The notes below the pieces were generated by a model that saw nothing but the letters and a program-made list of their open reading frames with translations, was not told where the DNA came from and did no database searches. A program made the position numbers and the translations under genes. 64,000 nt of DNA from Octopus bimaculoides. Taxonomy: Eukaryota. Below, piece after piece: positions 10,958 to 44,205 of this stretch; positions within the stretch are counted from its first letter, which is position 1, and each line of letters starts with the position of its first letter. The stretch lies in NCBI RefSeq assembly GCF_001194135.2, contig NC_069004.1, positions 12,511,799-12,575,798 on the forward strand, written 5' to 3'.

Positions 10958-12325
10958 GTGAGTATCATTGGTTAATTAAAATGCTTGAATGATCTTAACA
11001 AGTTTTATTATGGGTATATTTGTTGTTGTTTTTTAAACCATCTGATTTCAGGGGTGAGGAGGGGTTTTTGTAATTATTTGACTACCAGTTCCAGTCAATG
11101 CACCATGGCCATGCTGCAACATCACTATCGTATTCTACACATTTTTATTATTTTCATTAATTTTTTTATAGGCATAGGAGTGGCTGTGTGGTAAGTAGCT
11201 TCCTTACAAACCACATGGTTCCGGGTTCAGTCCCACTGCGTGGCACCTTGGGCAAGTGTCTTCTACTATAGCCTCGGGCCGACCAAAGCCTTGTGAATGG
11301 ATTTGGTAGACGGAAACTGAAAGAAGCCCGTCATATATTTGTGTGTATATATATATGTGTGTGTGTGTGTCTGTGTTTGTCCCCCCAGTATCGCTTGACA
11401 ACCGATGCTGGTGTGTTAACGTCCCCGTAACTTAGCGGTTCAGCAAAATAAACCGATAGAATAAGTACTAGGCTTACAAAGAATAAGTCCTGGGGTCGAT
11501 TTGCTCAACTAAAAGTGGTGCTCTAGCATGGCCGCAGTCAAATGACTGAAACAAGTAAAAGAGTAAACATAATAATTAAAATTTAATGACGTAACTAATG
11601 GGAATTTTATATTCAGAATCTCACTTCAAAAATATTGTATCTTAAAAACCAGGTTTAAATTTTTCTAACTGAGATAATCAGTAGATCTTCTGACAAACAG
11701 CATCATCATCATCATCATCATTTTAACATCCATTGTCCATGCTGGCATGGATTGGACAGTTTGACCAGGGCTGGCCAGCTGGGGAGCTGCACCAGGTGAT
11801 GAGCTGGTAGAATCGTTAGCATGCCGGGCAAAATGCTTAGCATTATTTTGTCTGTCTTGACGTTATGAGTTCAAATTCCATCGACGTTGCCTTTCATCCT
11901 TTCGAAGTTGATAAATTAAGTACCAGTTGCGTACTGGGGGTCAATCTAATCGACTGGTCCCCTCCCCCAAAATTTCAGGCCTTGTGCCTATCATAGAAAA
12001 GATTATTATTATTAAGGTGGTGAGCTGCTTAGTAGCATTTCATCCATCTTTATGTTCTGAGTCCAAGTTCCGCCAGGTTTGACTTTGCCTTTCATCCTTT
12101 CGGGGGGGGCCAATTGACTGCTGGAGTTGATGTGATTGATTATTCCTTTCTCCCAAATTTCAGGCCTTGTGCCTATAATGGAAAGAATTGTTGATCCTAC
12201 TACGCTAGGTAATGTCTAACAGAAAATATTCTACTAAATATTCAGCTGTTATTATATCATTAAATGTTATGCCTGATCTCAGGAAGACTTCATTGTTAAC
12301 TTCAATATTTTTTGTCTTTTTCTAG

Positions 12326-12358
12326 AAAGTGTCTGTATATACTGCTGCTTTTGTTGGT
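12326..12358 (+). CDS. MTCH2: MTCH2-like micro-exon
   Basis: ttctag/KVSVYTAAFVG/gtaagt vs human EMKSYSQAVTG. Confidence 0.8.
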
Positions 12359-12463
12359 GTAAGTACCATTTCCCTTTTTTCATTCTACCCCTCTCTTTAT
12401 CTCTTTACTTCTTTCTTGCTTATGATCTCATTCTTTTATGCATAAATACTCCCTTACATAACC

Positions 12464-20770: not shown

Positions 20771-23700
20771 GGATTATTATTATTATTATTATTATTATGT
20801 TTGTGGTATTCAGTTATGGCTCTCTGCATCTTGAGCTCAGCCCCAGCTTTGCCCCCACATAATTTTTACCCTTCTGAGATCAATAAAATGATGGGCCAGT
20901 CAAGTCCTGGGATCAATGATATTAACTGATCCCTTCCCTCTAAAATTGCTGACCTTCTGCCTAAATTAGAAGTTGTTATTATTGCCATGTCCATCAGTGG
21001 GTCCTGCAGATGACATGTTATGATTGCCTAAATATCTGACAGGGTTGACAGTGAGTTGGTTAAGAAATACATCTGTTCCTGTATTTTTGTTTGAATTTTG
21101 TTGAACTCTACCTTCATAACGATCAAATGGTGACTTTTTGTCTCATAAGCTGACTGCTTTATAGCTTCTCAGTCTTAATAATGTTCATCTCTTTTATTGT
21201 TGACGTTCACACTAATTATGATATGATATTTAAGCTTTTCTAAGGAATTATCATTCAAATATTTTCATGTTTTTGTCCTTAATACTTCAATGTGTGTGTG
21301 TGTGTGTGTGTTGATGTTTTATTATTATTATCAAGACATTTTATACCGCAAACTTTCAACTATTGAAGTTGGTTGTAGTTAGAGAAATGATAGAGATTTT
21401 ACATTCCATTTTCTCCGTGACATTAAGGAAATTCATGGTAATTCCCCCACTTGGCCATAGCCTATAAGTACTGGAGGGGTCAATGTAATCGACCAAATCC
21501 ATTCCCCTAAAATTACTGGCCTTGTACCAAAATTCGATGCATAGAACAGAATAAACTTCATCACTTCAATATTTCCATGACTCTTAGATCTGCCTTCTTT
21601 GCATCCAATACTTGGATTAATATTGGCCACCAGGTCTTTAGCTGCCTCTAACAGAGTCCACTCTGTTGCAATTGTTTGGCTGAAGTCTCCCTCTGGTAAA
21701 AGGATAACCAATAAGTTGTGGTTTGTTCCTCTCTTTCCCTTACAACCAACAGTCTCAGAGACCTTGTAATATGGTCACAGAGACTGTCCTTTCTTCTCTG
21801 GCTAAAACAATTGAAATAATTGAAGAAACTACCCCCCCCCCCCCGTTTGTTGACATTTGTAGTTATGACAAAGTAAATAGTTGAAATGAAATTTTGAAGA
21901 AGGTTTCTATAACTATGATACAAACTTGATGTTTACTACATTCAAACATTTCATTTTTATAAAGTAGAGAAAGAAATAACATTCAGAATAAACCAATGGT
22001 TTTTATACTGATTAGTTTTATTTCCTTTAGCGGATTAGCAAATAATTCAAATAAAATGCTAGGCAACAACTTATTTCATTAAAACACTCTTCAATCAAAT
22101 AAAACTGATGATACATGTAGTAAGTAAAATTTATTCAAATATTTTGCTATCTCACAATCTATTGGCATAGATTTTTTTGTTGTTTTTTTTCACGTCATGT
22201 TGATTTAAATAACAGACACCATTAAATCTCATTTCTTGTCCTAAAAAGAAAAGAAATAAAACAATTACTGTTTTATTTTCAAAACTGATTATAAAAATAT
22301 TTCTGATATTTTTAATTGTTATATAGAATTAGTTTGTTTCTTGAAGAATATTTTTTATTTTTTTAAAGTTTCAAGATCTTACCTTTGTGTTTCAAAAACA
22401 GAAGATATAGGATCACTTATTATTTACTTCTAATTACTGATTGTACAAACTTCAAATTTGTCTTAGATTCCAGCAAAAAATTGTTGTAAAAACATTTGTT
22501 ATTAGAATAAAGTTTACTCAGTTTTTCAAATAACTTAATATGATTATTTTTCTATTTTCTATGGGAAGTGTTTGGGAATCGTCGTTGGAGCCATTGGTAA
22601 GGTGTGTTGACAGACATGAGGACCACTGAGACACTTGGAAACCTGCTGGTGGGATGATGAATTTGGAAAGAGAGATTGATGAGAAGCGGAAGAGGGTCTG
22701 AGAATGGTATAAGATTTGGAGTATGGTAGCAAAAGAGGGTTACAAGGTTGCAAAGAAAAGCAGCAGCAAAGGCAAAGCAGTTACATAGACAATGTTTGGA
22801 GAACATAAGCATTTGGGGTTAAGGGGTCAGTGAGAAAGATTGTAAAGTAGTGATGTATTTGAAGTGAACTGCTTGAAAGGTGAAATAAGACAAATTGTTG
22901 TGAAATCGCAAGAAATTAAAGGAAGGTGGAAGGGATATCATCATCATTTAGTGTCCACTTTCCATGCTGGCATAGATTAGGTAGTTTGACTGGAACTGGT
23001 AAGCTGGAGAGCTGCACCAAATTCCAGTCTGATTTGGCATGGTTTCTACGGCTGGATGCCCTTCCTAATGCCAACTACTCCAAGAGTGTAGTAGATGCCT
23101 TTTGAATGTCACCAGAAAATAAATACAATGGCAACATCAAGAGGGGTCCAGTTTTAGCATTGATAGAGGAGGTAATAAGAATAATGAGGATGGGAAAAGT
23201 AGGAGAGACAATTCGATTTGTTGGGAAATATGGTGAAGGTAGCAGAAAGTTGGGTGGGGTGAAGAGGAGGAAGACTGTATCAGAGATCTGTATGTTGGCG
23301 GAAGAAGAGAGCTTTTCAGTAGATTGAGAATTGGAGGTGTTTTAACAATTAATGAAATTTCTTTGACTTTCAGGCATTTTCTTTCTCCATTCAGCAACTG
23401 ATGAAGAATACAACGACACATTCAACACCTCAGCTGTTTACAGAACAAATATTTGATGTTTAGTAAAATCAAATGGAAAAGAAAATAACATTTTTGAAAT
23501 TCCCCTTCCAAGCTTTGATGATAAAGATTTCAGTGTAAACTACCAGTCTGTATGACATTATATATACTCAAACATGGAATGGCACTAACTTTAATAGTTT
23601 GTCTCAGAGAAACTAGTCTGTAGATGCCAGACCAGCAAGGGGAGGCGGCTGACCTCCCCTGTTCGAAGGTTATAATGGACACAGGTTCGTGTGTCACATA

Positions 23701-25438: not shown

Positions 25439-25506
25439 ATGTCTCAGTGTGCAGCATTGAATTGCAAGAGTGTAACGTCAGAAGGTAGCGGCAAAACCTT
25501 TCATTT
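25439..25506 (+). CDS. THAP-C2H2-BTB protein exon 1 (THAP N-half)
   Basis: MSQCAALNCKSVTSEGSGKTFH(L)/gtgagt; M-x2-C-x4-C…FH THAP start. Confidence 0.9.
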
Positions 25507-26620
25507 GTGAGTATAAATCTATTATACTTGACAAAAAACCCCGTAAATATAAAATATTTGATAAAATAATAAGTCGATTTATTGGAATTATTGCAACCGG
25601 ATTATTTCTTTTACAAATATTGTATTTAACGTTTAAAACATTTTTTTGAAGGAATATTTTCGACGAAAAGTAGTAAAATATTTTTCATTCATTTTCTAAC
25701 ACGTGGTTTTATTTATTTATTTTATTTTTAATGATTTAATGGAAGCAATACGTGACGGCAATGCCCTTAACATTTAGTGGGGGTCCCTTTATGATATTAG
25801 GATTGGTATGGTTGATTTTCCAACTGGAACAGCTGTCAATGTATTACAGAAAAAATATGGACAGAATTCCGGTTTAAGCACCCCATGTAACCCTTCATAA
25901 CTCTTATATTTTTTGGGAATTTCCAGAAGATTTTTGAGAACGGGTATTCATACGATTATGGAAAAAAATTTTTTTCGTTTTTTTTAAAACCCTACCCACC
26001 ATTTCATAAATCCCAAAAGTTCCACTCTTTATCGGATTTTTTTTTTGCATAAATCCCAGCACTGGACCACTTTTGGGTGCGTCATCATTCCATTAAATGT
26101 GTTTATGGGGAGAAAAATATTGGGAAACATAAATATATGTCAGAGTGGCAAACAAACGAGGACAGTATCAGGGAGCCATGGGATGTGCTAGAAACAACAG
26201 CTAAATCGTCCTTAAATCACAATTTTTTTTTATACATGCGTATGAATTCTCGAATGTAGAACACAAATTCGCAAAAATTTTCTGAAAATTCCAGAAAAAA
26301 AAAAGAAAAAACGTTATGGGGGATTATCTGGATTTTGATAGAATTTCAGAGAAGACTAACATGCCGATGCATGCCAGCCTCATCCTCCCATGTCACCAAG
26401 GGGAAGGTTATTCATTTGCAGCAGTTCAGCTTCACACTGCATGTTGCTACAGGTGTTGCAATTAGAAGTCAAAAAGCCAGGACCAAATACCACAAGGCAT
26501 CTTATCTGAACATCTAACACTGGTCACTTCACCATCCTGAATTGACCCTTTCCTCACCTCTCCAAAAGGGTGCAAAGGGAAAGTTGACTTCGGCTGGATT
26601 TGAACTCAGTGGGTAGAGTG

Positions 26621-26720
26621 TTCTCACCTGTGTTCAGCTCTGGTTATTTCTCACCTGTATTCAGCTCTGGTTATAATTCTCACTTGTGTTCAATTCTGGT
26701 CATTTCTCACCTGTGTTCAC
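26621..26720. repeat. ~27-bp minisatellite, about 4 units
   Basis: ttctcacctgtgttcagctctggttat repeated with variants. Confidence 0.85.
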
Positions 26721-27553
26721 ATCCCCCCTCCCCAGTACTTTATAAGTCACCTAATTTGTCATCAGCACAATTTGTATTGAGTTTGCAGACTAACACCTAC
26801 AAGAAAAAACGTGAGCTGGAATAATTCTCTCTTTCAAGTTCTTTCATTATTCTATCCCCACTTGTACTTCACCCGACTTAATTCCCTTCCCCCAATTTCC
26901 GTACCTCACTGTACTAAATTCCCGCCTCCTGTACCTTATCCTATCAAATCCCTACTGTGACTCTCTAAACCTGTGGTTCTCAACCTTTTTAATATCCAGC
27001 CAGACCCAAAACCTGGTTTTTGTTTTGGAGGCTGCACCAAAAAAGGTAAAACTAAGAAAAATTTACTTTTATAGAAGAAAGACCATTGGGTGGGGCCACC
27101 AAAAGGATACTTGGTGGGTGCTTGCAGCCTTAAGAGCCACAGTCAAGAACTGCTACTCTAAACATTCTTCTCTTTAGGACTGCAATCCTCTAGAATTTCT
27201 TTGCTCATATTTTCCCCTTCAAACATTATAACACCATCATCATCCTTTAATGTCTGTTTTCCATGCAAGCAATGGGCTGGGCAGTTTGACCAGAGCTGAC
27301 AAGCAATAGAGCTATACTAGGTTCCAGTCTGATTTAGCTTGGTTTCTACAGCTGGATGCCCTTCCAACTACTTTACAATGTGTGCTGGGTGAATCCTGGC
27401 TGAATAGAAACCCTATTGCCTTCACTTATGTAAGAGGGCCCAGTGTTCCTTTTTTTTTTTTTTTTTGTACTAAAATATTAAAATAAAATCAATACAGAAT
27501 CGCTGTGCACTTTTTCATGTTTGTAACAAAACAACTTCTTTTGGAATTTCCAG

Positions 27554-27746
27554 ATTCCCCAAAGATGCCATTCAACGACAATGTTGGCTGCTCCAAATGA
27601 AACGAGAGAATTACTGGCCTTCAGAGACATCTGTGTTATGTTCCAACCACTTTGAACCTGACTGCTTTGACCAAATTGGTCAAACGACTCAGCTAAGAAA
27701 GGATGCAGTCCCCACCATATTTAAAACTACAAATAATCTTAAAAAG
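27554..27746 (+). CDS. THAP-C2H2-BTB protein exon 2 (THAP C-half)
   Basis: FPKDAIQRQCWLLQMKRENYWPSETSVLCSNHFEPDCF…LRKDAVPTIF; conserved P, W, CxxH, F and AVPTIF box. Confidence 0.95.
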
Positions 27747-27894
27747 GTAATGTTATTTCATCTTATCACTCTACATCGGTTTTCCCATCAGCACCATCAA
27801 AGCCATCATTGTTTTAACGTCTATTTTTACATCCTGACATGGGTCTGCTGTGCAGGTTACTGTTACTCATCTTCATTTTTTTAATTTTTATCAT

Positions 27895-28122
27895 CTCAAT
27901 CGTGGCCGTTGCCAGTATCGCCTGACTGGCCTTCGTGCCAGTGACACATAAAAGCACCTACTACACTCTCGGAGTGGTTGGCGTTAGGAAGGGCATCCAG
28001 CTGTAGAAACTCTGCCAAATCAGATTGGAGCCTGGTGTAGCCTTCGAGTTCCACCAGTCCTCAGTCAAATCGTCCAACCCATGCTAGCATGGAAAGCGGA
28101 TGTTAAACGATGATGATGATGA
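27895..28122 (+). mobile_element. RTE LINE 3' UTR remnant ending in (GAT)n
   Basis: …ggaagggcatccagctgtagaaac…ccatgctagcatggaaagcgg…gatgatgat. Copies at ~22940(-), 27236(-), 30700-31125(+), 34768(-), 36150(+), 42794(-), 54030(-), 55355(-), 57440-57890(+), 60717(+). Confidence 0.8.
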
Positions 28123-29466
28123 TTTCAACTCTGGAGTTCTCTAGCCTGAGATCTGATCACATGCAGTGTCCTCTTTCTTCATGCCACATGTGGCACTATT
28201 AAGTGTCTACTTAATCCTTTCCTACATGTTAAACAAGGTCACTTCTCAGATGATGCTGGGTTTTTGTCGTGCACTTTAAAGAAGATCCGAGGAAACTATG
28301 AATAACGACAATGTAACTTCAGCTTCACTAATAATAATAATAATAATAAACCTTAGAAATACTCTACAATCTAGATGTATTGTAAAAGTCAGCATTATTT
28401 GTAACTGCATGCACATTGCATAAAGTACTGTCTGTCTGGGGTCCTTGTTGTGACTTGACAAACAGTACAAACCCCCTGTAGACACAATATCTTCAATCAA
28501 CAACCTCACGATATTGTATACTGTGTGATGTCTATAATAATAATAATAATGGTGATGATGATGATGATGATGATTTCAAATTTGTCACAAGGGCAGCGAT
28601 TTGGGGGCAGGGGGGGATAAGTCAATTACATTGATCCCCAGTGTTCAACTGGTATTTATTTTATCAACTCCGAAAGGACGAAAGGCAATGACAATGCTTC
28701 CATGGTGCCACGATAAAATTCTTGCAGTGTATTCTGTAAAGTGGCAGGTTATAGGAACCATGCCAAAATTGGAATGTGAGAGTAAAACAACAGAGCAGTA
28801 ACACCAAATAAGAACCGATTTGAATGATGGTGGTTGTCCAACCCATGCCAGCATGGAAAAGTGGACATAAAACAATGACGATGATGATGATTTATTATTA
28901 TTATTAATGAAGGCAGAAAGCTGACAGAATCATTAGCACGCCAGGCGTTCTTGAGTACAGTAATGTGCCACATATTTCTGTCCCCTGTCATCTCCTTCGT
29001 AACACTCAGCCTTTTGTGATCGGCCTTCAAAACTTTTTTTAAGTTAGGAAGGTGTGATACAAGGCAGATTTTGCTGCTATTTCTAGCAGACACTTAATAG
29101 TGCCACATAGAAATAGCAGCAAAATTTGTCATATAAGTTTCCTCTTTGCAGTTATTCATGCATTGACTGGCCTTCAAACCTTTGTCCTGGTGAGGTGGGG
29201 CTTCTATACATTTCTGTCTACCAAATCCAATCCCAAGGCTTTGGTCAGCCAGGGCTACAGTAGAAGATGCTTGTCCAAGGGTGTCACGCAGTGGGACTGA
29301 ACCCAGAACCATGTGGTTGGGAAGTAAACTTCTTACCACACAGCCACTCCTGCACCTAAGGAAAGGCTGTGAGTCTTTTATGCTATCAAAAACAGTCCAT
29401 AATTTTAATGTTGTGCAATTAAATTTCATAGTGTATTATTCATTGTTTTATATTTTTGTGTTGCAG

Positions 29467-29578
29467 CTTTCCACATCCATCCAGCCAATGTTGAAAGGAG
29501 GACTTTACAAATGCAACAAGTGTAAATACTCAACAGACAAAAAACCAAACTGGTACAAACATAGGAACAAACATTTAG
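29467..29578 (+). CDS. THAP-C2H2-BTB protein exon 3 (C2H2 finger 1)
   Basis: LSTSIQPMLKGGLYKCNKCKYSTDKKPNWYKHRNKHL; C-x2-C-x12-H-x3-H; ttgcag/gtagg. Confidence 0.88.
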
Positions 29579-31756
29579 GTAGGTGAACAGATTTCTATTT
29601 AATAGCTTAATGCCATTGCTTGTCTCACACACACACACACACACAGAGACACACTCACACAAACACACACTCCAAACTATACACATGCATGCATACTATT
29701 GAAGACATCGCAGGATGTGTTGAATGACTGCAAAGAGTAAACCTATATGACAGATTTTGCTGCTATTTCTATGCGGCATTATTAAGTGTCTGCTAGAAAT
29801 AGCAGCAAAATCTGCCTTGTATCACACCTTCCTAACTTTAAAAAAAATCACTTCAGGATAATGTATTCTAAGATACAGTCATCATCATCATCATCGTCAT
29901 CATCATTTAACGTCCGTTTTTCATGCTGGCATGGGTTGGACCATTAAACCCAGAAGAAAATGGGATTATTACAGCTGGAATATCTTTGATTACCTGAACA
30001 GGTGCGTGGTGTGCAACGTGAAACGAAGTGTGTCTAGGAATTGAAATGTGATCGCGAGTGTAACACCTTCACCATTGAACCACTCACCTTCATATGTGTG
30101 TGTGTGTGTGCATGTATACATGTATGTATGTAGTTGTCTGGTCTGTGTGATTACAAAGTCCAATTTGCAACCTTGTTGTTTGGGGTTTGGACCCAGTGCA
30201 CTGCTCCTTTGTATATCTTCTGTTGTCCCAGGCTGATTAATGCCATGTAGAGGAATTTGGTAGGCATTTCAACTGTGTGGTCTCAAGTTCAATCCCACTA
30301 CATGACACTTTGGGCAAGTTCCTTCTACCATGGCCTCAGGCAAAAGGAACTGGTAGAGTAAGTACCAAACTTAAAAATAATAAATACTGAGGTTGACTCA
30401 TTAAACTAAAACTCTTCAAGGTGGTACCCCAGCATGGCCGCAGTCTGAAACAAATGAAAGATAAAATATCATAAGGAATCTGGTCCACAAGTCCATGGCC
30501 TGGGATTGGTATTTCATTATTGACCCTAGGAGGATGAAAGGTAAAAGTTGGCCTTGATGGGATTTGAACACAGAGCTGAGACAATTGGAGCAAATACTGC
30601 AAGGCTTTCGCAGTCCAATACTCTACTGACTGTTCCAAATCATCTCAAATTGTGTCCACTTCCACAATACTGCTTACATCTGTCCTAACAGTGTCAATCT
30701 CTAATTGTAGAGGAACATGTGGAAGGGACAGACCTAGGACAACATGGGATGAAGTGGTGAGAAAGGATCTTCAGATGTTGGACCCCACAGAGGGGATGAC
30801 AAAGGAACCAAAACTCCTAGAAGTTTCCTGTGCTTGAGAAGATATGTCAAACTAAGTAAAATTGTGGTTGTCCTTGTATCCCTCTTCAGCTGAACATTCC
30901 TAATTTTGCAGGCTCATGGGTGTTGGCGCTGCACAAAAAGCACTCATACTGGTACCATGTAGAAGCACCCAGTACACTCTGTAAAGTGGTTGGCATTAGG
31001 AAGGGCATCCAGCCGTAGAAATCATGCCAAAGCAGACATGGAGCCCAGGCAGCTCTTCAGCTGGCCAGCTCCTGTCAAACCGTCCAACCCATGCCAGCAT
31101 GGAAAATGGATGCTAAATGATGCTGAAGAGGGGGAGGGTGAAGAATACCCTGTTCCATGACTGTGTAACCAAATTTTAATTCTTTTTTTTTTGTCTTTGG
31201 TCAGTAAGTGTTATTTCGTATTTGCTTCTATCTAGAAATCAAATTATTCTCTTCAAACTTTGCTTTTGCCACCTGGACATCAATGTTTTGAAAACTGGCC
31301 TATTTTCCATTACATTTCAGACAGATTCAGCACTGAGTTGCTGAAGCAGAAATATCATTATAACAAATATTCTACTCAATATCACAGATTTGCTTGTCAG
31401 TTGCTTGATTGTAACCACTTGAGGATGCCCCTTAGTGGCTGACAATATGTGCATCTGATATGAGCAGGAGTAGTTGGGGAGTACCATAGCCATGAGTTGA
31501 GAGGAATTCTTTGGGGTTTGAATAAATGTAACAAAAGTAAAGTTTGAAGGCATTATTAGCCATTTTACATAGTTTTTAGGGGCAAGCAAATAGAAAATTA
31601 CAGTTGCTACCCAAGGATAAAAATTGTTTTAATGATGTGACTTATTGAAAATATTGATTTAAGTTGATATTTCTGACTTAATAAGCTTTTTTAACGAGGA
31701 GTTTCAAACTGCAGTGTTTTCTGAAATGCTGCTAATATATTTGGTTTATCATTCAG

Positions 31757-31926
31757 GTTTACGACGCCACTGTTGTACAGAATGTAACTACAAAGCAACG
31801 ACAAGCAGCAACCTCAAGCGCCACCTGGCAATCCATGCAGATCTTAGGGAGTTCAAATGTCCCTTTTGTTTAAATTTCTTTCGCCAAAAGATTCACCTGG
31901 ACAAACATATACTCTATAAACATGAG
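31757..31926 (+). CDS. THAP-C2H2-BTB protein exon 4 (C2H2 fingers 2-3)
   Basis: GLRRHCCTECNYKATTSSNLKRHLAIHADLREFKCPFCLNFFRQKIHLDKHILYKHE; attcag/gtaact. Confidence 0.93.
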
Positions 31927-33061
31927 GTAACTAAAAATATTGTTTCAAAGAATTTTATTTCCTGGCACAAAGCCACCTCCTTCATCAAATGTCTATTTTC
32001 CATGCTGGCATGGGTTGGACAGTTTGACAGGAGTTAAACAGCCAGAGAGCTGCCCAAGCTCTGTTTGTCTATTTTGGCTTAGTATCTAAAGTAGGATGCA
32101 CTTCATAATACCAACCACTTTGCAGAGTGTGCTGGGTGCCTTTTACGTAAGTGCTTTTTATGTGAAACTGGCATGAATACTTTTTACATGACATCGGCAT
32201 GAATGTTTCTTACATGGCGCCAGCAAGACAGCCTTTATGTGGTGCTAGCACAAGTTCTTTTTACATGGTGCCAACACAAGTGCTCTTTACATGGCACCAA
32301 CACAAGTGCTTTGTACATGGTACCACTTTTTATGTGGCGTCAGCACGAGTGCCTTATGTATACCACCAGCACACGTGCTTTTTATATGACATCATGGAGG
32401 TTTTCTCCTGTAAGTTGAGGCTACATTCTGGAGCACCACCTTGAGGGGTTTTAGTCAAAGAAATTGATCCCAAGACTTGTCTCTTTTGCCAAACTGCTAA
32501 GTTACAGGGATGTAAACACACCAACACTGGTTGTCAAGCGGTGATGGAGGGACAAATAAAGACACAAGACATGCATACATACATATGCATACATATATCA
32601 CAGGCTTCTTTCAGTTTCCTATTTCTTTACTGCCCACAAGGGGCTACACACAGAGGGGACAAACAAGGACAGACAAACGGATTAAGTCGATTATATTGAC
32701 CCCAGTGCGTAACTGTTACTTATTTAATCGACCTCGAAAGGATGAAAGGCAAAGTCGACCTCGGCGGAATTTGAACTCAGAATGTAGCGGCAGACGAAAT
32801 ACCGCTAAGCATTTCACCTGGCATGCTAACGATTCTGCCAGCTCGCCGCCTTTCAGTTTCTGTCTACCAAATCCACTGACAAGGCTTTGGTCAGCCTGAG
32901 GCTATAGTAAAAGACACCTGCCCAAAGTGCCACACAGCAGGGCTGGACCCAGAACCATGTGATTGGAAAGCAAGCTTCTTACCACACAGCCATGCCTGTA
33001 ATGATTTTTATAAATTACACTATCACTAATTAACATGTTTACATATTCTTTTCTTTCTCAG

Positions 33062-33207
33062 CGCAAAAGACCAAAGTTGGACCTGACCAGAGTATTAAGC
33101 CGTGAAGCACTGAAAAAGGTTTCCTCTCCTAAAGTTAACACAAAAGATTCTCAGCTAAATACTGACCTTTACAATCAAGACAGAATCCTTAAACCAATTC
33201 AGATCTG
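33062..33207 (+). CDS. THAP-C2H2-BTB protein exon 5 (NLS-like linker)
   Basis: tttctcag/RKRPKLDLTRVLSREALKK…KPIQI/gtaact; phase 0 to 2, closes the frame to exon 6. Confidence 0.78.
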
Positions 33208-33267
33208 GTAACTTTATATTTCTTTAACCCCTTTAGCATAAAGGTTACTTTATCAAATGTAGTGTAT

Positions 33268-33590
33268 TTGATGGCCTATAAGACACACGAATGCATAGGA
33301 CACACCCTAGCCTAGGCTATACTTTCGTAAAATAAATTACCACTAAAATAATGTTTTAATTCTTCCACTTTCCTGTATAACTTTATGTTATTACCGGTAA
33401 TTATAAGCAATTTATTGCATCTACATTCAATATAAACATACTGTAGGCGATTGTTCACCTATAGATGGCAGCACATGTTTTGTAAACATACATACCGTTT
33501 TGAGCCTACATTAAGTGCATTGGATGCAGGGAGATTTTTTAAGCCATTTTGGGGTAAAAAAAGGTGTGTCTTATAGGCCATCGAATATGG
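33268..33590. mobile_element. pogo/Tc2-like MITE
   Basis: Inverted repeats gatggcctataagacac / gtgtcttataggccatc; boundaries approximate. Confidence 0.5.
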
Positions 33591-33620
33591 TAATTCTTAC
33601 TGATTGACATTGTTTTGAAT

Positions 33621-33981
33621 TGTTGGCACTCTGTCGAGGATTCCAGTTGATTCGATCAACGGAACAGCCTGCTCGTGAAATTAACGTGCAAGTGGCTGAG
33701 CACTCCACAGACACGTGTACCCTTAACGTAGTTCTCGGGGATATTCAGCGTGACACAGTGTGACCCTTTGAATTACAGGCACAACAGAAACAGGAAGTAA
33801 GAGTGAGAGAAAGTTGTGGTGAAAGAGTACAGCAGGGTTCGCCACCATCCCCTGCTGGAGCCTCATGGAGCTTTAGGTGTTTTCACTCAATAAACACTCA
33901 CAATGCCCGGTCTGGGAATCGAAACCGCGATCCTATGACCGTGAATCCGCTGCCCTAACCACTGGGCCATTGCGCCTCCAC
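33621..33981 (-). mobile_element. tRNA-derived SINE family C
   Basis: Head gtggaggcgcaatggcccagtggttagggcagcg…ggtttcgattccc. Further copies at 42063-42447(-) and 62858-63241(+, 13-bp TSD agttgtttgagca at 62845-62857 and 63242-63254). Confidence 0.88.
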
Positions 33982-34189
33982 ATTGTCAGATGGTAAACAT
34001 AAACAAAAGTGCTCTCTCCAGGACAACTGGATGTAGTTTGGAGGAGATTTGGCTGTTATGTTTAGCAAGTCAAAATGACCACAATCAACTTGTTGGTTCA
34101 TAATTATTTTGTTGCTTATTTTTCTCTTTATTTCAACTTAGTTGTCTTTTATGGAAAATAGGAACATTAATTTTGTGATTTATTTGAAG

Positions 34190-34496
34190 GGAGATTCCTG
34201 AAAATCCAGTTCCATTATCCGATGGTAAAGACGATCAGCAATGTTCCCAACAGGAACTTGAGTTTTCCGAACCAAAACCACAATACTCACAAAATAATCA
34301 GCAATATCCCCAGCAGGAACTTCGATATTCTCAACAAGATGATGCTGTTCCTACAATGGTCTATGTTCCACCACGCTCCAAGAAAGTCCATATTGTCTCT
34401 GAGCATCAGTACCATGTCATGGAAAGTTTGGCACAGCTCTGGAAGAAAGGCAAATTGTGTGATGCTGCCATCGGAAATGGAAGTTCTGTGTTGATG
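34190..34496 (+). CDS. THAP-C2H2-BTB protein exon 6 (Q-rich linker + BTB N-terminus)
   Basis: …HQYHVMESLAQLWKKGKLCDAAIGNGSSVLM/gtgagt matches the BTB start H…L..L…G.LCD. Confidence 0.9.
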
Positions 34497-37088
34497 GTGA
34501 GTCTCGACTGTTTTCAATTTTTTTTTTTTTCTCTTTTACTTGTTTTTGTCATTGGACTGTGGCCATGCTGGGGCACCACCATGAAGAATTTTTAGTCAAA
34601 TGTATCGACCTCAGGGCTTATTATATCTGCTTTATGGTACTTATTCTATTGGCCTCTTTTGCCCTACTGCTAAGTTATGGGGATGTAAACAAACCAACAT
34701 TGGTGGTAGGGGACAAATACAGACACAAAGACACACACTCACATATATATATATATATATATATATATCATCATCGTTTAACGTCCGTTTTCCATGCTAG
34801 CATGGGTTGGACGATTTGACTGAGGACTGGCAAGCCAGAAGGCTACACCAGGCTCCAATCTTATCTGGCAGAGTTTCTACAGCTGGATGCCCTTCCTAAT
34901 GCCAACCACTCCGAGAATGTAATGGGTGCTTTTACGTGCCACCGGCACGAGGGCCAGTCACACAGTACTGGCAACGGCTACACTCATACAAGAGACTTCT
35001 TTCAGTTTCCATCTGCCAAATCCACTCACAAGGCTTTGGTCAGCCAGGAGCTATAATAGAAGTCACCCAAGGTGCCATGGACTGAGCCCAGAACCATATG
35101 GTTAGGAAGCAAACTTCTTGCTACACCTCTGGTACAAATTGAAACAGTTTAACCAAACTGTCAAAATTTAGGATATGTTTGCATTTTTTAACATTTCATT
35201 AATTTGTAGTGGTCATTTCATGATGAATTTAAATGTTTGTGGGCAATATTCAGTGATCTACATGCTTCTTGGTCAGCTTGACCATGTTATATGGTGTGAC
35301 AAACTGGGTTACATCATGTTTCAGTAGCTCCATATTTCACTGGGCAGGTGAAATTAACGACTGTCTCTAATTAATTGACTAAAACAAATTGCACCTGTCC
35401 AGGATTAAGCCCAGATAGTGACAGCTAAAGAACAAATATATTAGTATTTTAAACTATTAGTAGAGTGACTGACATATGTAGCTTTCCGTGTATTGTCTGC
35501 AAATATTAATCATTTAGCATTCAGATTTCTTTGTCAAATGTATTGCTTGTTTATTCACATTGTTTTGAATTAATCATGTATTGTAGCTTCATGATTTCAA
35601 TGGTGTGTTTGTATATTTTTAGAATGACATTGTAGGGCAGTTAGCTGCCTCTAGCGGTCAAGTGTCCATCATTGACAAAACCAAACAAGGTTGAAATCAA
35701 TGTGATCTGGTGGTCTTGGCGCTGGAGGTAGCAGGGATTCATCTCCCCATTAGTGATACAAACAAAAGTGCATTTTGCCCCAAAAGCCAATATGAGAGTT
35801 TCTCTCATGGTATCTACCACAGTATAGTTTGTTCTAACAGAACATCGACATTTAAGTGGGGATTACTTCTCGGTATTAATACTGCCTCTGTTGCTAATAT
35901 ATATTGTAAGGTAGGTGTGACAGGTTGGATCTGCTCGGTTTTAATATGATAGAATATTTGGGCTGGATATGGGGTTAAAGGTCACTTTAACCCTTTATCA
36001 CCACTCTTAAATATTAACACTCACATACATGCACACACACACACACACACACACTCTATTTAGCCAAGGAAGCTTTTTCTTTCTTCCTGTTGGGCCTCAC
36101 GGAGGCAGTGATAAGTGACTGAGACCTTTGGCAATATACCATGCTAGAGAAGACCTGTCAAGCCAAGTGAGAACATAGTCATGGCCGATGCCTGTGTCGC
36201 GTAACTGGCGCCCGTGCTGGTGGCATGTAAAAAGCACCCACTTCACTCTTGGAGTGGTTGGTGTTAGGAAGGGCATCCAGCTGTAGAAACCATGCCAAAT
36301 CAGAACGGAACCTGGTGCAGCTCCCAGCTTACCAATTTTCCGTCAAACTATCCAACCCATGCCAGCATGGAAAGCAGATGTTAAACGATGATTATGATGT
36401 TCTTTTCTTTTGTCATGTGACCTCACTAGTGCTGATGGCACAAAAGAAAAAAACAAAAACACCCACTGGTTGGTGTTAGGAAGAGCGTCCGACTAGAAAC
36501 TATGTCAAACCTGACATTGAAGCTTGATGCAGCCCTGCAGCTCATTTGATCCTGCCAAAACATCCACCCCATGTGTTTAACCCTTTAATATTCAGATTTT
36601 TCTGTCAGATCTAAAACTTCTTCATTCATATTATTTTAAACTAATTATGCATTATGTTGTAGCTTTGAGATTTTGATGATGTGATTGTTTGTCTTTAGAA
36701 GGACATTCTTTGGTCAGTGTGAGAAGCCAGATTTGGCTGGTTTGAGCATAAAACTATAAGAATATCTTGGCCGGATATAACCAGTTTAAATGCTAAAGGG
36801 TTAAATTTATTTTGAGAATTATCAAGAAATTTTCAGGATTTAGTAAAAAAAAAAACCTTTCATTATTGAACATGTGTTTGGAACATGATACAAAATTATA
36901 CTGGAAAGTTTTAATTTAAATATAACCCATCTTAACAGTGGCATTTTTCTATCACAGAACCAGAGAAAAGATCAAACAGTTTGGTATCAAACAAAAGGTT
37001 AGCATGAGATAAATATTACAACATTTTCATCTTTCACGTCTATTTTAATTATTTTAAACCTATTTAACTCTACAATCTTCATTTGCAG

Positions 37089-38249
37089 GTTCACAAGATC
37101 GTCTTACTTGCTGTCTGTCCGAAGCTACTTTCAACCGTTGACACGTACTACAACCAGTTCCTTATGGTCAACCTACCCCAAACTGTGAGCAATGAAGCTC
37201 TCAATGCTTTTGCAGAATACATTTACAAGGGTCACTTAAACCTGGACCCAGATTTGCTGAATCAGTTAAGGACAATAGCATTATGTTTAGAAATTGATGA
37301 TTTGAAGCAATTATGTGATTCAGAAAGTGATTCGTCTTCCTCTCAGGTCCAGCTCCCTAACAGTAAGAAACCCTCTGATCCAGCACCTGACACAATAACT
37401 CTTACATTTTATCCGCCACAAACGCAACAGTCAACAGAGAATGAAGTTAATTTATCAAATTCCTTTTTTGTTTCCAGCCATAATCTTCAATCAGTTACGA
37501 AATCGCAAGCCAATGTTACAATTAAGAAAGAAATGACCCCAGGCAGAGCACAATTGACTCGTTTCCCATCTCAAAAAGACCTGGTTGAACGAAAAAGTAG
37601 CGCAAATCATCTGGTCAGTGTAGGAAGATCGGAGGTAAGAGATATTTACGAACATTTTCAGAATAACGATTTAGTTAGCACATCGATTGCTGTCTGTGAT
37701 GAACAGGACTTGACGTCTCACACCAAATCGACACCTCTCGATGTCAATCTACAACAGTATAGTTATATCCCTTTAAACGATCGCTCTCAAGTCCCAACAG
37801 AACCCACTTCATCCCTTCGTGATGCAGCAGGTAATAATTTTCCTCAAGTAAATCAACAGGAACTACCTTTAGAATCTGTAGTTAAAATGGAACCGGTTAT
37901 CATTGAAGACGATTCAGACGATGATTCTCTCTTACCGTCGCCATCTTCTACTTTCATGGATTCGTCTCATATCTCTTCTTCCAGACCCATGGATGACAGC
38001 TTATCAGAAATAATCACCACCAACTGTTCAACTAACCTGAGTGACTCAATAGCAAACAATCATTGCCAAGAGGGCAATAATTCCCCGAGTGTTCATTTAT
38101 CTCATATTGCTGTTAACAGTCGGCATAAAGGAGATTCCTTTTTGAATCCTGAAATATTTCGGTATAACCATCAAATTGAAAGACATTTTACATCGAAAGA
38201 GATTAATTCAACACTGAATGAAGAAATCTACACTAAAGATTTTAGATAA
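37089..38249 (+). CDS. THAP-C2H2-BTB protein terminal exon 7 (BTB remainder + S/D-rich tail)
   Basis: tttgcag/VHKIVLLAVCPKLL…VSNEALNAFAEYIYKGHLNL…LEIDDLKQLC. Summed exons give 2157 nt = 718 aa + stop. Confidence 0.93.
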   Translation, partial: VHKIVLLAVCPKLLSTVDTYYNQFLMVNLPQTVSNEALNAFAEYIYKGHLNLDPDLLNQLRTIALCLEIDDLKQLCDSESDSSSSQVQLPNSKKPSDPAPDTITLTFYPPQTQQSTENEVNLSNSFFVSSHNLQSVTKSQANVTIKKEMTPGRAQLTRFPSQKDLVERKSSANHLVSVGRSEVRDIYEHFQNNDLVSTSIAVCDEQDLTSHTKSTPLDVNLQQYSYIPLNDRSQVPTEPTSSLRDAAGNNFPQVNQQELPLESVVKMEPVIIEDDSDDDSLLPSPSSTFMDSSHISSSRPMDDSLSEIITTNCSTNLSDSIANNHCQEGNNSPSVHLSHIAVNSRHKGDSFLNPEIFRYNHQIERHFTSKEINSTLNEEIYTKDFR

Positions 38250-38379
38250 CATTTACGTAAGCATAATCAGATTTAATACTTCTGATAATCATTTAATCAT
38301 CATTACCATCATGATTTAAACCATTTACAACACCTGATTGTGTTTCTGGTCATTTCAGTATGTGTTTCAAGATCTCTCC

Positions 38380-38740
38380 AAATACATTCAAACCATTTTT
38401 TTCTCGAACCTGCCATCACCTACCTCTCTTGTTAGCCACTATTTTGTTACTTCAGTACATATTGAAAGCATTGTATTACTTTCGTCGTTTCTCAGACTCA
38501 CATGTTCTACAAGGAATGACTTCAGCTTCAATGTCAGCACAAAGAAAACTGAAATTATGAACCAGCCAGCCCTTACATGTGTGGTGCCTGCATACATGGT
38601 CAAAGACTACATTCTGTAGACTGTTGATAATTCTACATAATTTGGCAGCAAAATCAAGCATCATTCACTTTGCTGATGAAGACAGCATTGCTTTTAGTAG
38701 AAAATCTGGAAGAGAAAATGTCTGTCTCCAAACCACTTTA
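38380..38740 (+). mobile_element. Degenerate RTE-like LINE ORF fragment
   Basis: …FSFNVSTKKTEIMNQPA… resembles the post-YADD RT segment; frameshifted, runs into a gap. Confidence 0.5.
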
Positions 38741-39749: not shown

Positions 39750-39900
39750 TTATGCACTGGATTGACATGCACAGCCGTTATAGAAGTGATACCACAATCG
39801 ATGGGTGCAGGATTGATCAGCTGATATTCGCAGATGACATGGTGTTACTTGGCTCATCAGAAGGGAATCTCCAGCATGCACTGGACGGAGTCACTGCCAA
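39750..39900 (+). mobile_element. LINE reverse transcriptase fragment
   Basis: IDQLIFADDMVLLGSSEGNLQHALD (FADD catalytic motif). Confidence 0.75.
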
Positions 39901-39907
39901 GAGCTGC

Positions 39908-39961
<54 letters not shown>

Positions 39962-40139
39962 ATGCGTACATCCATAGAATACAGTCAGAAATCTTGTAAT
40001 GTGCTACAAACTGTAATTTCTTTGGATGTGCATATTTTAAGCATCATGGGCATTCTTATGTGCTTTTTACATGACACCAGCACAGGACTCTTGAAGACTA
40101 ATCCTCTTCACCAGAGGTAGTCACCTTAACACTTCTTGA

Positions 40140-40876: not shown

Positions 40877-42510
40877 CAACATTTTCACCGTCACAAATTA
40901 TTAAGCAAGTATAATAAAAATGATAATTGTGTCAGAACAAACATTTATTTAATTCAACAGTAAAGGTTTAATAAAAATATTATTCATAAAGGACTTAATA
41001 TAATAATACGTTCGAATGAAAATAATCATGGCATTATGATGTCATACAGTTCCTAATGTTTGATGTATGATCCTCCACATGCAACAACCTTCCTTGCACG
41101 CTGAGCCATTGAATTTGTCAAGGTGATGATATCCTCGTGTCATGCTTTGAGCAGCATCTACAATAGCATCCCAGAGGGCAACTTTACTTGAAAACTGCTG
41201 TCCATCTTGATAAACCTGCCTCTTCAGGACACTCCGCAGGTTCTCGATCAGGTTTAAGTCAGGAGAACAAGGTGGCCACTCCATCAAAACGACCTGCAGA
41301 GAAGCTTATTTGGTGCAGGTATTCCTTAGAATTCTTCACTGAATGAGAATGGGGCATTATCTTGCATGAAGACCAGCTTTCTCATGAATGAAAGATTTTG
41401 CTTTTTGAACCACGGTTGGAAATTGTCCTTTAAGAAAGTAATATATGTTTTCGATGTCTTCTTAATGCCATCTGAGACTTTCCATGGTCCGACCATCATA
41501 CCACCAACGATGCCAGCCCAAAACTTAACCTCACCTCTCACCTCTTGGTGTCTCAATGAGGATGGTTCCTGCTGACTGATACCCAACCTTTACTCCAGCC
41601 ATCTGGTCCGTCAAGGATGGCAAGGCATTGGTCAGTGAACAGAGCTGTTGAAAAATCTATTTTCATGTAGTCTTTTGCCTATTTCAGTCTCTTCTGCTTA
41701 TGAACATCCTTCAGAGGGGGCCTTATAACAGGTTTAACATTCCTGGTTACCTGCTCCAAGAAGCAACACCTGGTAGTTTCCGATATATCTTCCCTGCCAC
41801 ACCATTTGAAGACTTCTTTAGTTGTCAGACATGGGTTCTGCACAACTCCCCTTTCCACATGTGACAAAGTATGATTTGAAGCAACCCTTGACTTACCCTT
41901 ATCAGCCCTCAACCAGACAGAAATAGGAGACTTCACAAATTTCCTCACTGTTCGGGGATCTCTTCACAGTATTTTTGATATTTCTATGGTTGTTTTTCCT
42001 TTTCCAAGCTCTGATACAATGGTAGACTTCTCATTCGAGGTAAGATCACATTTCTGATCCATTGTTCTTGGCACTCCGTCGCTTACGACGTCGAGGGTTC
42101 CAGTTGATCTGATCAACGGAACAGCCTGCTCGTGAAATTAACGTGCAAGTGGCTGAGCACTCCACAGACACATGTACCCTTAACGTAGTTCTCGGGGATA
42201 TTCAGCGTGACACAGTGTGACAAGGCTGACCCTTTGAATTACAGGCACAACAGAAACAGGAGGTAAGAGTGAGAGATAGTTGTGGTGAAAGAGTACAGCA
42301 GGGTTCGCCACCATCCCCTGCCGGAGCCTCGTGGAGCTTTAGGTGTTTTCGCTCAATAAACACTCACAACGCCCGGTCTGGGAATCGAAACTGCGATCCT
42401 ATGACCGCGAGTCTGCTGCCATAACCACTGGGCCATTGTGCCTCCACTCTGATCTATAATGACACTTAAATAGGACACCTGCCTAATAATTTGGGACAGC
42501 AGAAATGTTG
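40877..42510 (-). mobile_element. Decayed Tc1-family DNA transposon, interrupted by a SINE
   Basis: MDQKCDLT… HTH start, FTDQC…LDGPDGW, FMQDNAP and MEWPPCSPDLNLIEN motifs with stops and frameshifts; imperfect ~34-bp TIRs (…gtcacaaattattaagcaagt / acctgcctaataatttgggacag…). Confidence 0.9.
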
Positions 42511-43408
42511 TTGCTATACGATAATGGCTGTCGTTTGTTTTTGTCTGTACAGATCTGATTTATTTTAACAGAATGTACACAGATAGGTGTTGCTTTCAAA
42601 AGCAGAAGCACACTCTAAGATACAGAGCAGTATATTTTTAAAATGAGGATGTTTATGGGATTATCTTAGGTATCACATCCATAAATCATTTAGCTTTATG
42701 GCATCTCATCAGATCCCAAAACCTATTGGCCCTTTATGGACATGAACCCTAAAGTAATTGCATAAACCGGCCTTCCCCATTTTTAATATATATCATCATC
42801 ATCATCATCGTTTAACGTCCGCTTTCCATGCTAGCATGGGTTGGACGATTTGACTGAGGACTGGTGAAACCGGATGGCAACACCAGGCTCCAGTCTAATT
42901 TGGCAGAGTTTCTACAGCTGGATGCCCTTCCTAACGCCAACCACTCAGAGAGTGTAGTGGGTGCTTTTATGTGTCACCCGCACGAAAACAGCCACGCTCG
43001 AAATGGTGTCTTTTATGTGCCNNNNNNNNNNNNNNNNNNNNNNNNNNNNNNNNNNNNNNNNNNNNNNNNNNNNNNNNNNNNNNNNNNNNNNNNNNNNNNN
43101 NNNNNNNNNNNNNNNNNNNNNNNNNNNNNNNNNNNNNNNNNNNNNNNNNNNTGGGCCTACCTCTTCCAGCAGGACAGAATTTTGTCAGTGAACAGGTCGT
43201 GGTCTCAAAGCGCCGAAATTATTTTGGCAAATTAAATTTAGATGTTGAAGTGAATCTAACGGGTTTTATGTGTTTCTTAAATGGCTTATAAACACCTTCC
43301 ATGCTGCAATTGTTTTCATTCCAGTACACGATCTCAGATCAGGTCGCTTGCTATGCAAGTACATCTCCATAATATATATATATATATATATATATTGATT
43401 CTAGAACG

Positions 43409-43478: not shown

Positions 43479-44146
43479 TAATTCTTTACTTTATATTTCT
43501 CATTTTGTCCTGTTATGGTGTTTTGCGAAATTTTTCTTTGTGGTTGGGTCGTTGGTAACCTCTTTCTAGCATATTAGATGTCCACCTAGTGGTCATCCCT
43601 TATACACGTGTAATATATATATATAGTAAGAAGTAAAAAAGATTAGCAAATCCAGGTATACATCTAGAAAGCCCTCAGTGTTAAAAGAATTTGGTTGACT
43701 ATATGAAACAATCAGATACCAATAAATTCAAGTGGAATTGACATCCAAGATCGTTTTCAAATTTTGGCACAAGGCCAGCAATTTCGTGGGTGGGGATATA
43801 TCGATTACATAGATCCCACTACTCAATTGGTACTTATTTCATCGACACCGAAACCCTCGGTGGGATTCGAACTTGGGACGTGAAGACGGACGAAGTCCCG
43901 CTAAGCATTTTTGCCCGGCGTGCATATGATTCTGTCAGCTCGCCGCACTTTTTTTTTAAAGTGGCCTGCAAAAGATGCTACGGTGAATTGAACTCTGTAC
44001 CTCTTAAATTCCAGCTGAGCGCTCTGTACTACTGAGCTAAACGATCACTGACAGTAAATTTACATATCGCTTAGAAAGAATTGCTAGGAATTCGGAGCAC
44101 ACACATACGCACGCAGTGTAGAGAGCGGAAGAGAGACGAAAGTAAG

Positions 44147-44205
44147 ATGGCTTGTAGCAGCACCAGAAGAAGATATCGGGGTGTACCTTCAAGTTTATTG
44201 TCTAG
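44147..44205 (+). CDS. AMN1: AMN1 homolog exon 1
   Basis: MACSSTRRRYRGVPSSLLS+AG/gttcgt; phase 2 joins exon 2 in frame; resembles human RRVSQLLDL. Confidence 0.7.

Follow-up and report, generated by a model that had tools for sequence, protein, structure and literature searches.

An octopus THAP-C2H2-BTB gene of a mollusc internal-BTB family, with a zinc-finger cassette apparently gained by exon shuffling

Introduction

Does a cephalopod gene join a THAP domain, C2H2 zinc fingers and a BTB/POZ domain in one protein and, if so, where did these parts come from? The question is raised by a 64-kb stretch of AT-rich eukaryotic DNA with assembly gaps from Octopus bimaculoides (contig NC_069004.1, positions 12,511,799 to 12,575,798; referred to here as the window and numbered from its first letter). 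A sequence-only reading of the window had proposed one gene with these three domain types, built by domestication of a transposase domain and by exon shuffling, and possibly novel. THAP domains ultimately derive from P-element transposases, and the order of the domains appeared to be the reverse of that in vertebrate ZBTB proteins. Here, we identify the gene as LOC106875595, a real, single seven-exon gene that is already annotated but uncharacterised. What is new is the copied finger cassette only; the rest of the architecture is of a known and catalogued, if uncharacterised, kind.

Results

LOC106875595 is a single, conserved seven-exon gene

In an independent rebuild of the gene model, seven segments on the forward strand between positions 25439 and 38249 were spliced into a single coding sequence of 2157 nt that specifies 718 amino acids (Table 1). 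All six introns are of the GT..AG type, the TAA stop codon lies at 38247-38249, and an in-frame stop is found 12 codons upstream of the ATG. The translation is letter-for-letter identical to XP_014779299.1 (UniProt A0A0L8IBV0) of O. bimaculoides, annotated as "uncharacterized protein LOC106875595". The exon model of the sequence-only reading, its three domain types and their order were all matched exactly. The gene itself is not novel: in addition to the RefSeq and UniProt entries, it is listed as "THAP BTB", with the fingers unmentioned, in a supplementary table of a 2023 study, which also noted that Octopus THAP and CENP-B proteins bear BTB/POZ domains ("THAP BTB" and "CENPB BTB") (PMC10027918). 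For the THAP-C2H2-BTB architecture, we found no description in the literature.

Orthologs of 718 residues are present in O. sinensis (XP_029650480.1; 92% identical) and O. vulgaris. In each of the three species, a single product was found that is not labelled as an isoform, and each ortholog was seen on a single contig. The NCBI model of the O. sinensis gene has seven exons of equal lengths (68, 193, 112, 170, 146, 307 and 1161 nt) with GT-AG introns, and it lies at the corresponding locus with collinear flanks. Exon 1 is identical in the two species. Overall, the exons are 93-96% identical between O. bimaculoides and O. sinensis without a frame-breaking indel, as compared to 84-91% for the introns, which carry many indels and dispersed repeats. 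In a genomic contig of a third octopod (SRR11869394; L004), exon 7 is 85% identical and retains both the acceptor site and an uninterrupted frame.

Every region of the gene is under purifying selection. Between O. bimaculoides and O. sinensis (Ks, i.e. synonymous divergence, of ~0.17), the ratio of nonsynonymous to synonymous divergence (Ka/Ks) is 0.22 for the whole coding sequence (P = 3.8e-15), 0.12 for the THAP domain, 0.06 for the fingers, 0.06 for the BTB domain, 0.34 for the linker formed by exon 5 and the 5' part of exon 6 (P = 0.0086) and 0.29 for the tail, and amino acid changes are significantly below the neutral expectation in every region (P from 0.0086 to 3.8e-15). Because the value for the fingers is the lowest in the gene, the fingers are translated in this frame.

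Three domain types and a candidate sumoylation motif

The THAP domain is recognised by Pfam (PF05485) at residues 4-79 with 58.5 bits, as compared to a cutoff of 23.9, over the complete profile (1-87/87). THAP domains lie at the N-terminus of the protein and are defined by a C-x2-4-C-x35-53-C-x2-H zinc site, conserved Pro, Trp and Phe positions and a closing AVPTIF box; the octopus protein has C4-x4-C9-x42-C52-x2-H55, FP at residues 24-25, W34 and the box. In the region between the THAP and BTB domains, the best Pfam zf-C2H2 score is 21.7 bits, below the cutoff of 25.2. By direct reading, three regular C-x2-C-x12-H-x3/4-H fingers are present in tandem, in agreement with the C2H2 pattern of C-x2-4-C-x12-H-x3-5-H with a hydrophobic core.

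The BTB domain is found by Pfam at residues 311-413 with 36.4 bits (cutoff 20.5). Among sequences in the PDB, its top match is a Miz-1/BCL6 BTB fusion chain (8.4e-10), while Miz-1 (ZBTB17) alone matches at 3.9e-06, and further matches are BCL6, ZBTB48 and the internal BTB of SLX4. An AlphaFold model built from six family sequences (mean predicted local distance difference test score, pLDDT, 74.7) places a strand (E6-7) and a helix (H11-25) ahead of the core, and in Foldseek this model is most similar to BCL6, ZBTB8A, myoneurin and LRF, with template modelling (TM) scores of ~0.7. An N-terminal beta1 strand is typical of the dimerising BTB subtype (PMC11426971). The domain is, therefore, closest to the ZBTB (transcription-factor) subtype with its N-terminal beta1/alpha1 extension, through which strand-swapped dimers form in that subtype, and dimerisation is predicted. 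Identity with SLX4 was considered and rejected: human SLX4 also has an internal BTB, but its other features are absent.

Between fingers and BTB lies RKRPKL (residues 182-187), a possible nuclear localisation signal with the counterpart RKRSKL in O. sinensis. The tail of 300 residues had been described as acidic. It does contain one strong acidic cluster (VIIEDDSDDDS), but overall it is Ser/Thr-rich (22%) and only mildly acidic (13% D+E, 8% K+R). Adjacent to this cluster, which resembles a SUMO-interacting motif (SIM), is the SUMO-consensus sequence VKME, in the place of which paralogs have VKTEPVGPEDD or IKTEPIGPEDE. The shared pattern VK(T/M)EPV...EDD suggests a family-wide sumoylation-type motif.

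As a side observation, residues 301-304 (EHQY; window positions 34401-34412) match the HCF-1-binding consensus (D/E)HxY, a motif present in most human THAP proteins. The sequence is kept in O. sinensis, while paralogs have DHQR. We estimate that ~6% of proteins of this size would contain such a match by chance and, because EHQY is placed at the N-terminal edge of the BTB domain, it may be such a chance match.

The domain order is that of a mollusc-wide family

The BTB domain occupies residues 296-418 of 718 and the fingers residues 101-180, an order that is indeed opposite to that of vertebrate ZBTB proteins. To place this order, the 718-residue protein without its fingers was used as a query in a HMMER search of 1.84 billion representative sequences. 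The search yielded ~35 clusters with a ZBTB-type BTB in an internal position, which are from Octopus, Argonauta, the cuttlefish Acanthosepion and, more distantly, the gastropods Haliotis and Lymnaea. In seven of those that were checked (P0002, P0003, P0019, P0022, P0031, P0032 and P0069), an N-terminal THAP domain is followed by the BTB, and some abalone isoforms have C2H2 fingers at the N-terminus instead. Members of this family have an N-terminal DNA-binding module, a linker, a BTB that is split by an intron after ...GNGSS..M, and a last exon with the tail; LOC106875595 has all of these, its BTB is 53-60% identical to those of its paralogs, and the paralogs have the BTB-splitting intron at the same position.

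LOC106875595 thus belongs to a mollusc-wide, cephalopod-expanded family with the DNA-binding domain first and the BTB in the middle. Because the BTB is internal in ~35 clusters and seven of the family's proteins have an N-terminal THAP, the reversed order is the normal layout of the family and not distinctive of this gene. In our database searches, THAP, C2H2 and BTB in series were found only in Octopus species. The triple architecture is thus not a widespread named ortholog group, the finding that the sequence-only reading had said would count against it, although the THAP-then-BTB order comes close in spirit to being one.

The fingers match a two-exon unit of another gene

A long multi-C2H2 protein that is conserved in molluscs (1549 residues in the O. 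sinensis entry, with a counterpart in Argonauta) contains a run of three fingers to which those of LOC106875595 are 72% identical; identity is 66% to the cuttlefish and 62% to the gastropod protein. We refer to this protein as the donor. The corresponding donor exons are located at 10662-10770 (109 nt) and 12192-12361 (170 nt) in the O. sinensis locus L008 and at 11538-11646 (109 nt) and 12014-12183 (170 nt) in the cuttlefish locus L003. The 109-nt exon runs from phase 0 to 1 and ends in ...KHLG, and the 170-nt exon runs from phase 1 to 0 and ends in ...YKHE. Exons 3 and 4 of LOC106875595 (112+170 nt) agree with these in their phases (0-1-0), in the place at which the internal intron falls and in their 3' boundary. 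Because the two-exon unit is symmetric (0-0) in donor and copy, it fits any phase-0 intron without a break in the frame. At the base-contacting positions -1/3/6, copy and donor are identical in finger 1 (K/N/K) and finger 2 (T/N/R), and in finger 3 the copy has Q/H/K versus Q/H/R in the donor.

Together, these data support that the three fingers are a two-exon cassette copied from another gene by exon shuffling. The earlier proposal of exon shuffling is thus upheld for exons 3-4. An origin from C2H2 isoforms of the family itself (e.g. abalone X1) was rejected, since these are only 25-32% identical to the fingers versus 72% for the donor. Local capture from a donor beside a BTB cluster was also rejected: donor and BTB locus are both on O. 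sinensis CM016861.1 but ~49.6 Mb apart, and the O. sinensis ortholog of LOC106875595 is on another chromosome. Because the donor is distant from the BTB locus and off the ortholog's chromosome, physical adjacency does not explain the copying. Similarity between the introns of the cassette and those of the donor was traced to shared dispersed repeats only and is not homology.

The automatic names of the donor conflict, i.e. "claspin" in O. sinensis (P0254) and "Transcriptional repressor CTCF" in O. vulgaris (P0257), and both are doubtful. The donor fingers are collinear with ZF4-ZF10 of human CTCF at 85.7 bits (range 85.7-99). Because this score is about equal to that of the unrelated KRAB zinc-finger protein ZNF568, it does not demonstrate orthology, and the donor would be CTCF-like at most.

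The THAP-BTB backbone and the origin of the THAP domain

The best candidate for a relative without fingers is a five-exon THAP + BTB gene of Argonauta hians (L007, protein P0019), in which no finger-like sequence is present anywhere in 16 kb. Its exons end in phases 2,0,2,0 as compared to 2,0,[1,0],2,0 in LOC106875595, and its product shares two BTB motifs, HKIVLLA.CPKLLS and LNQLRTIA.CLE, that are otherwise specific to the LOC106875595 protein. This gene is likely the ortholog of the THAP-BTB backbone.

Intron 1 (25506/27554) interrupts the THAP domain in phase 2 in the codon between FH and FP, and the Argonauta gene has an intron at the same place. P26 of human THAP1 is, we assume, the signature proline, and by this numbering, intron 1 of THAP1 presumably interrupts the same codon in the same phase; the intron is reported to follow coding nucleotide 71 (PMC4049367). 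The octopus THAP domain is closest to those of cellular proteins from hagfish, gar and gastropods, among them a Babylonia protein in which a THAP domain is combined with many C2H2 fingers. In transposases of the P-element/THAP9 type, the THAP domain precedes an RNase-H-like, GTP-binding transposase region, and the element has terminal inverted repeats; LOC106875595 has no Pfam transposase domain, has introns and has orthologs across species. Descent of the THAP domain from an old cellular THAP gene fits these data, and a fresh transposase capture does not; with no transposase part, cellular nearest relatives and a THAP1-like intron, there is no sign of a recent domestication.

Related loci with many isoforms

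The paralogous loci LOC106877732 of O. bimaculoides and LOC115209932 of O. sinensis have up to 18 listed isoforms, in which THAP, FLYWCH, CENP-B/Tc5 helix-turn-helix (HTH), DUF3504 and QRICH1-like modules are swapped at the N-terminus onto a constant BTB part. In the 60-kb O. sinensis locus (L002, CM016861.1:139737681-139803928; proteins P0002-P0011), the DUF3504-like module that was mapped consists of a single 5' exon joined to three common exons, and further DUF3504-, THAP- and CENP-B-like exon copies are spread along the locus. Similarly, in LOC124116851 of the abalone Haliotis rufescens (P0069, P0196-P0208), C2H2, THAP, FLYWCH and MADF modules are joined to a constant BTB part. No paper describing these multi-isoform mollusc BTB loci was found in the literature.

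LOC106875595 shows no such organisation. By tblastn, no further copies of the THAP, FLYWCH, CENP-B and DUF3504 modules of the paralogs were detected within the 64-kb window, and one 718-residue product was found per species.

A separate observation concerns LOC106872006 of O. bimaculoides (XP_014774298.1; P0031), for which one predicted protein contains THAP, HTH, a DDE_3 (Tc1/mariner-type) transposase and an internal BTB; here, a whole transposase may have been captured between THAP and BTB.

Surroundings of the gene

Downstream of the gene, a conserved block matches positions 36337-38670 of the O. sinensis locus L001, the start of a leucine-rich repeat (LRR)/FBXL15-like neighbour, and because of this match gene order is conserved between the two species. 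Short dispersed repeats that resemble short interspersed elements (SINEs), of at least two families and ~170-240 bp in length, are found in the introns and flanks and recur often in the O. sinensis locus. Rfam and tRNA scans detected no RNA genes in the window. The remaining features are included in Table 1.

Table 1. Features of LOC106875595 and its surroundings, in window coordinates
Feature	Position	Strand	Description
Exon 1	25439..25506	+	68 nt, end phase 2; ATG and first part of THAP (MSQCAALNC...KTFH), zinc-binding C4 and C9
Exon 2	27554..27746	+	193 nt, end phase 0; remaining THAP with FP, W34, CSNH (aa 52-55) and AVPTIF (aa 74-79)
Exon 3	29467..29578	+	112 nt, phase 0 to 1; C2H2 finger 1 (aa 101-123); first exon of the putative cassette
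Exon 4	31757..31926	+	170 nt, phase 1 to 0; fingers 2 and 3 (aa 129-151, 157-180); second exon of the putative cassette
Exon 5	33062..33207	+	146 nt, end phase 2; opens with RKRPKL (aa 182-187; possible nuclear localisation signal), then linker
Exon 6	34190..34496	+	307 nt, end phase 0; Gln-rich linker and start of BTB (beta1 VHIV, alpha1, to ...GNGSSVLM)
Exon 7	37089..38249	+	1161 nt; remainder of BTB (to ~aa 418), Ser/Thr-rich tail, stop
BTB/POZ, ZBTB type	34386..37346	+	aa 296-418, interrupted by intron 6; Pfam, PDB sequence matches, AlphaFold/Foldseek
SUMO-consensus VKME	37881-37892	+	exon 7; SIM-like VIIEDDSDDDS next to it at 37896-37928 (motif pair aa 597-612)
Dispersed-repeat copies	22937-23103, 27901-28123, 30963-31129, 32618-32853, 34767-34976, 36205-36399, 42792-42985
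Conserved block	43626-45048	+	matches start of the O. sinensis LRR/FBXL15-like downstream neighbour
Decayed Tc1/mariner-type transposase	41045-41963	-	three open segments; DDE_3 match at 41045-41305, E = 7.2e-06, under Pfam cutoff
Open reading frame with ...LIFADDMVLLG...	39752-40120	+	resembles the YxDD box of reverse transcriptase; unconfirmed by Pfam
Tandem array	18092-18805		233-bp unit, 3.0 copies; 75-77% matching (both arrays)
Tandem array	56260-56734		230-bp unit, 2.1 copies; 75-77% matching (both arrays)
Mitochondrial carrier repeat, weak match	5237-5323	+	E = 0.001, 19.2 bits, under cutoff; possible exon of a gene further upstream

Discussion

Based on these data, we suggest a model for the origin and function of LOC106875595. 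In this model, a two-exon 0-1-0 finger cassette would have been copied at the DNA level from the conserved mollusc multi-finger gene and would have been inserted downstream of the THAP exons, into a phase-0 intron of a backbone gene with five exons and the THAP-BTB layout. The resulting protein would enter the nucleus and form homodimers, or perhaps heterodimers with paralogs, via its BTB domain, and each subunit would read a composite site consisting of a THAP site and a subsite of ~9 bp. The fingers probably read the subsite of the donor, given that their base-contacting residues have hardly changed. Most likely, the protein would act as a repressor or an architectural factor, a role that is suggested because a BCL6/Miz-1-like BTB is combined with a SUMO-type motif. 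Nuclear localisation, dimerisation, composite-site binding and repression are all inferred for this protein. Taken as a whole, i.e. a single gene for a cassette-shuffled THAP-C2H2-BTB factor that would bind composite sites as a BTB-paired and probably repressive regulator, we consider this reading probable.

Several points weigh against it. The joining of all seven exons in one mRNA is predicted from annotation pipelines, the consistency of frames and phases, and selection. Exons 3 and 4 together comprise 282 nt with phases 0-0, so that skipping them keeps the frame and an isoform without fingers is possible. With respect to the backbone, a neighbour-joining tree of the BTB domains leaves its relative unsettled, with bootstrap values of 11-15%, and the THAP domain is only 40% identical to that of Argonauta, as compared to 56% to a hagfish and 54% to the gastropod Babylonia domain; because of this low identity, orthology with the Argonauta gene is suggested rather than proven. 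Finally, the copy has residues in common with the gastropod donor that are missing from the cephalopod donors (TD.KP and RHLAIH), and because these were kept, the copy may predate the genus Octopus and have been lost, or left unannotated, elsewhere.

The rival explanation that survives best is alternative use of the THAP and finger modules, with exons 3-4 absent from many or even most transcripts, or with separate THAP and BTB products; the triple protein would then be a minor product or exist only as a prediction. Such an arrangement would resemble the related octopus and abalone loci, which yield many isoforms by exchanging N-terminal DNA-binding exons, and the frame-preserving length of exons 3-4 would allow it. 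However, a single product was found in each of three species versus up to 18 isoforms at the paralogous loci, other DNA-binding exons of the paralog type were not found in the window, and the fingers have the lowest Ka/Ks in the gene. Moreover, exon 3 is preceded by an acceptor site and lacks its own start codon. Because exons 5 and 6 are without their own start context and yet are constrained in the 718-residue frame in their linker-coding parts, a separate BTB gene is also argued against. We consider alternative use of the modules unlikely.

It is improbable, in our estimation, that the BTB serves mainly as a Cullin-3 adaptor and the protein as a DNA-tethered substrate receptor of a ubiquitin ligase rather than as a dimeric repressor. 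Fold and sequence searches do also match the BTB domains of KLHL/NS1-BP, gigaxonin and KEAP1, and one family member is automatically named KLHL1_4_5, but the best matches by sequence and fold are of the ZBTB type (Miz-1, BCL6, ZBTB8A and LRF), and the model has the beta1 strand of the dimerising subtype (PMC11426971). In adaptors of this kind, a 3-box/BACK and a substrate-binding domain come behind the BTB; the Pfam scan detects neither BACK nor Kelch downstream of the octopus BTB.

We give very little credence to the idea that the gene captured a P-element-type transposase domain recently or is itself part of a mobile element. The ultimate origin of THAP domains in P elements, the family member with THAP, HTH, DDE_3 transposase and BTB, and the Tc1/mariner remnant 3 kb downstream of LOC106875595 could be taken to point in this direction. 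By contrast, the 718-residue protein has no transposase or RNase-H part detectable by Pfam, its nearest THAP relatives are cellular, its THAP intron is, by the numbering assumed here, at the codon and phase of intron 1 of human THAP1, the gene lies at the corresponding locus with collinear flanks in O. sinensis, the three orthologs were each seen on a single contig, and all regions are under purifying selection. Least credible of all is an annotation artefact or a decaying pseudogene, given the intact frame and identical exon lengths in two species at a Ks of ~0.17, a Ka/Ks of 0.22 (P = 3.8e-15) and an exon 7 that is open in a third octopod.

Under the favoured model of a cassette-shuffled factor, LOC106875595 is a clean case of exon shuffling in keeping with the phase rule, and one that can be dated, with a 0-1-0 finger unit placed in a phase-0 intron and, as the outcome, a factor with two DNA-binding systems ahead of its BTB. 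LOC106875595 does not open a new class of regulators. It does draw attention to a mollusc family that has gone largely unnoticed, and to its multi-isoform loci, in which the usual BTB-first order of animal BTB transcription factors is reversed, and these loci are arguably the more interesting lead.

More speculatively, and with rather little confidence, the protein could act, in this lineage only, to assist or compete with a multi-finger chromatin protein that resembles CTCF, and the gene could be perhaps one fixed product of a mollusc-wide exon-mixing system. If so, it would add BTB pairing and THAP specificity at a subset of the genomic sites of the donor, with a function akin to that of CTCF/BORIS or of the BTB insulator cofactors of insects, and would be relevant to the unusual genome architecture of octopods. 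Mollusc loci in which DNA-binding exons of transposon origin are combined with one constant BTB would then be an undescribed mirror image of mod(mdg4) and lola.

How does LOC106875595 compare with known systems? Like the donor, for which entries from O. sinensis ("claspin"), O. vulgaris ("CTCF"), cuttlefish and Batillaria (BaRGS_001894) are available, it has fingers that are 62-72% identical and share the same exon boundaries, whereas the donor has many more fingers and neither THAP nor BTB. CTCF has eleven fingers, of which ZF3-ZF7 are highly conserved across bilaterians; LOC106875595 has three. With human THAP1 and THAP11, it shares an N-terminal C2CH THAP domain with an AVPTIF box, the position of THAP1 intron 1 (under the numbering assumed above) and a sequence similar to the HCF-1 motif, while in those proteins dimerisation is via a coiled coil, and both BTB and C2H2 fingers are absent. 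As in vertebrate ZBTB/POK proteins (BCL6, ZBTB17/Miz-1, PLZF and LRF), a BTB that is closest to their subtype, including beta1, is combined with C2H2 fingers. However, in those proteins an N-terminal BTB is followed by C-terminal fingers, whereas in LOC106875595 the BTB is internal and follows the fingers, which are only three, and a THAP domain is added.

In Drosophila, mod(mdg4) and lola join a constant BTB to interchangeable DNA-binding modules (FLYWCH, C2H2) from alternative exons (PMC11426971). The paralogous octopus and abalone loci likewise vary their DNA-binding modules around a constant BTB, but in mirrored arrangement, with the variable modules 5' and the BTB in the constant 3' part; moreover, the mollusc BTB is not of the arthropod TTK type, and LOC106875595 itself shows no alternative modules. 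Its closest kin are the uncharacterised members of the mollusc family (O. bimaculoides LOC106877732, O. sinensis LOC115209932, Argonauta Ahia01_000673700 and Haliotis rufescens LOC124116851), with which it shares a ZBTB-type BTB at 53-60% identity, the intron that divides this domain, a last exon that encodes the rest of the BTB and a Ser-rich tail, the putative sumoylation motif, an (I/L)Y.(K/T)D C-terminal end and, with several members, a THAP domain at the extreme N-terminus. Unlike the multi-isoform loci of this family, LOC106875595 is single-product as far as seen and, unlike the family as a whole, it inserts three C2H2 fingers between THAP and BTB.

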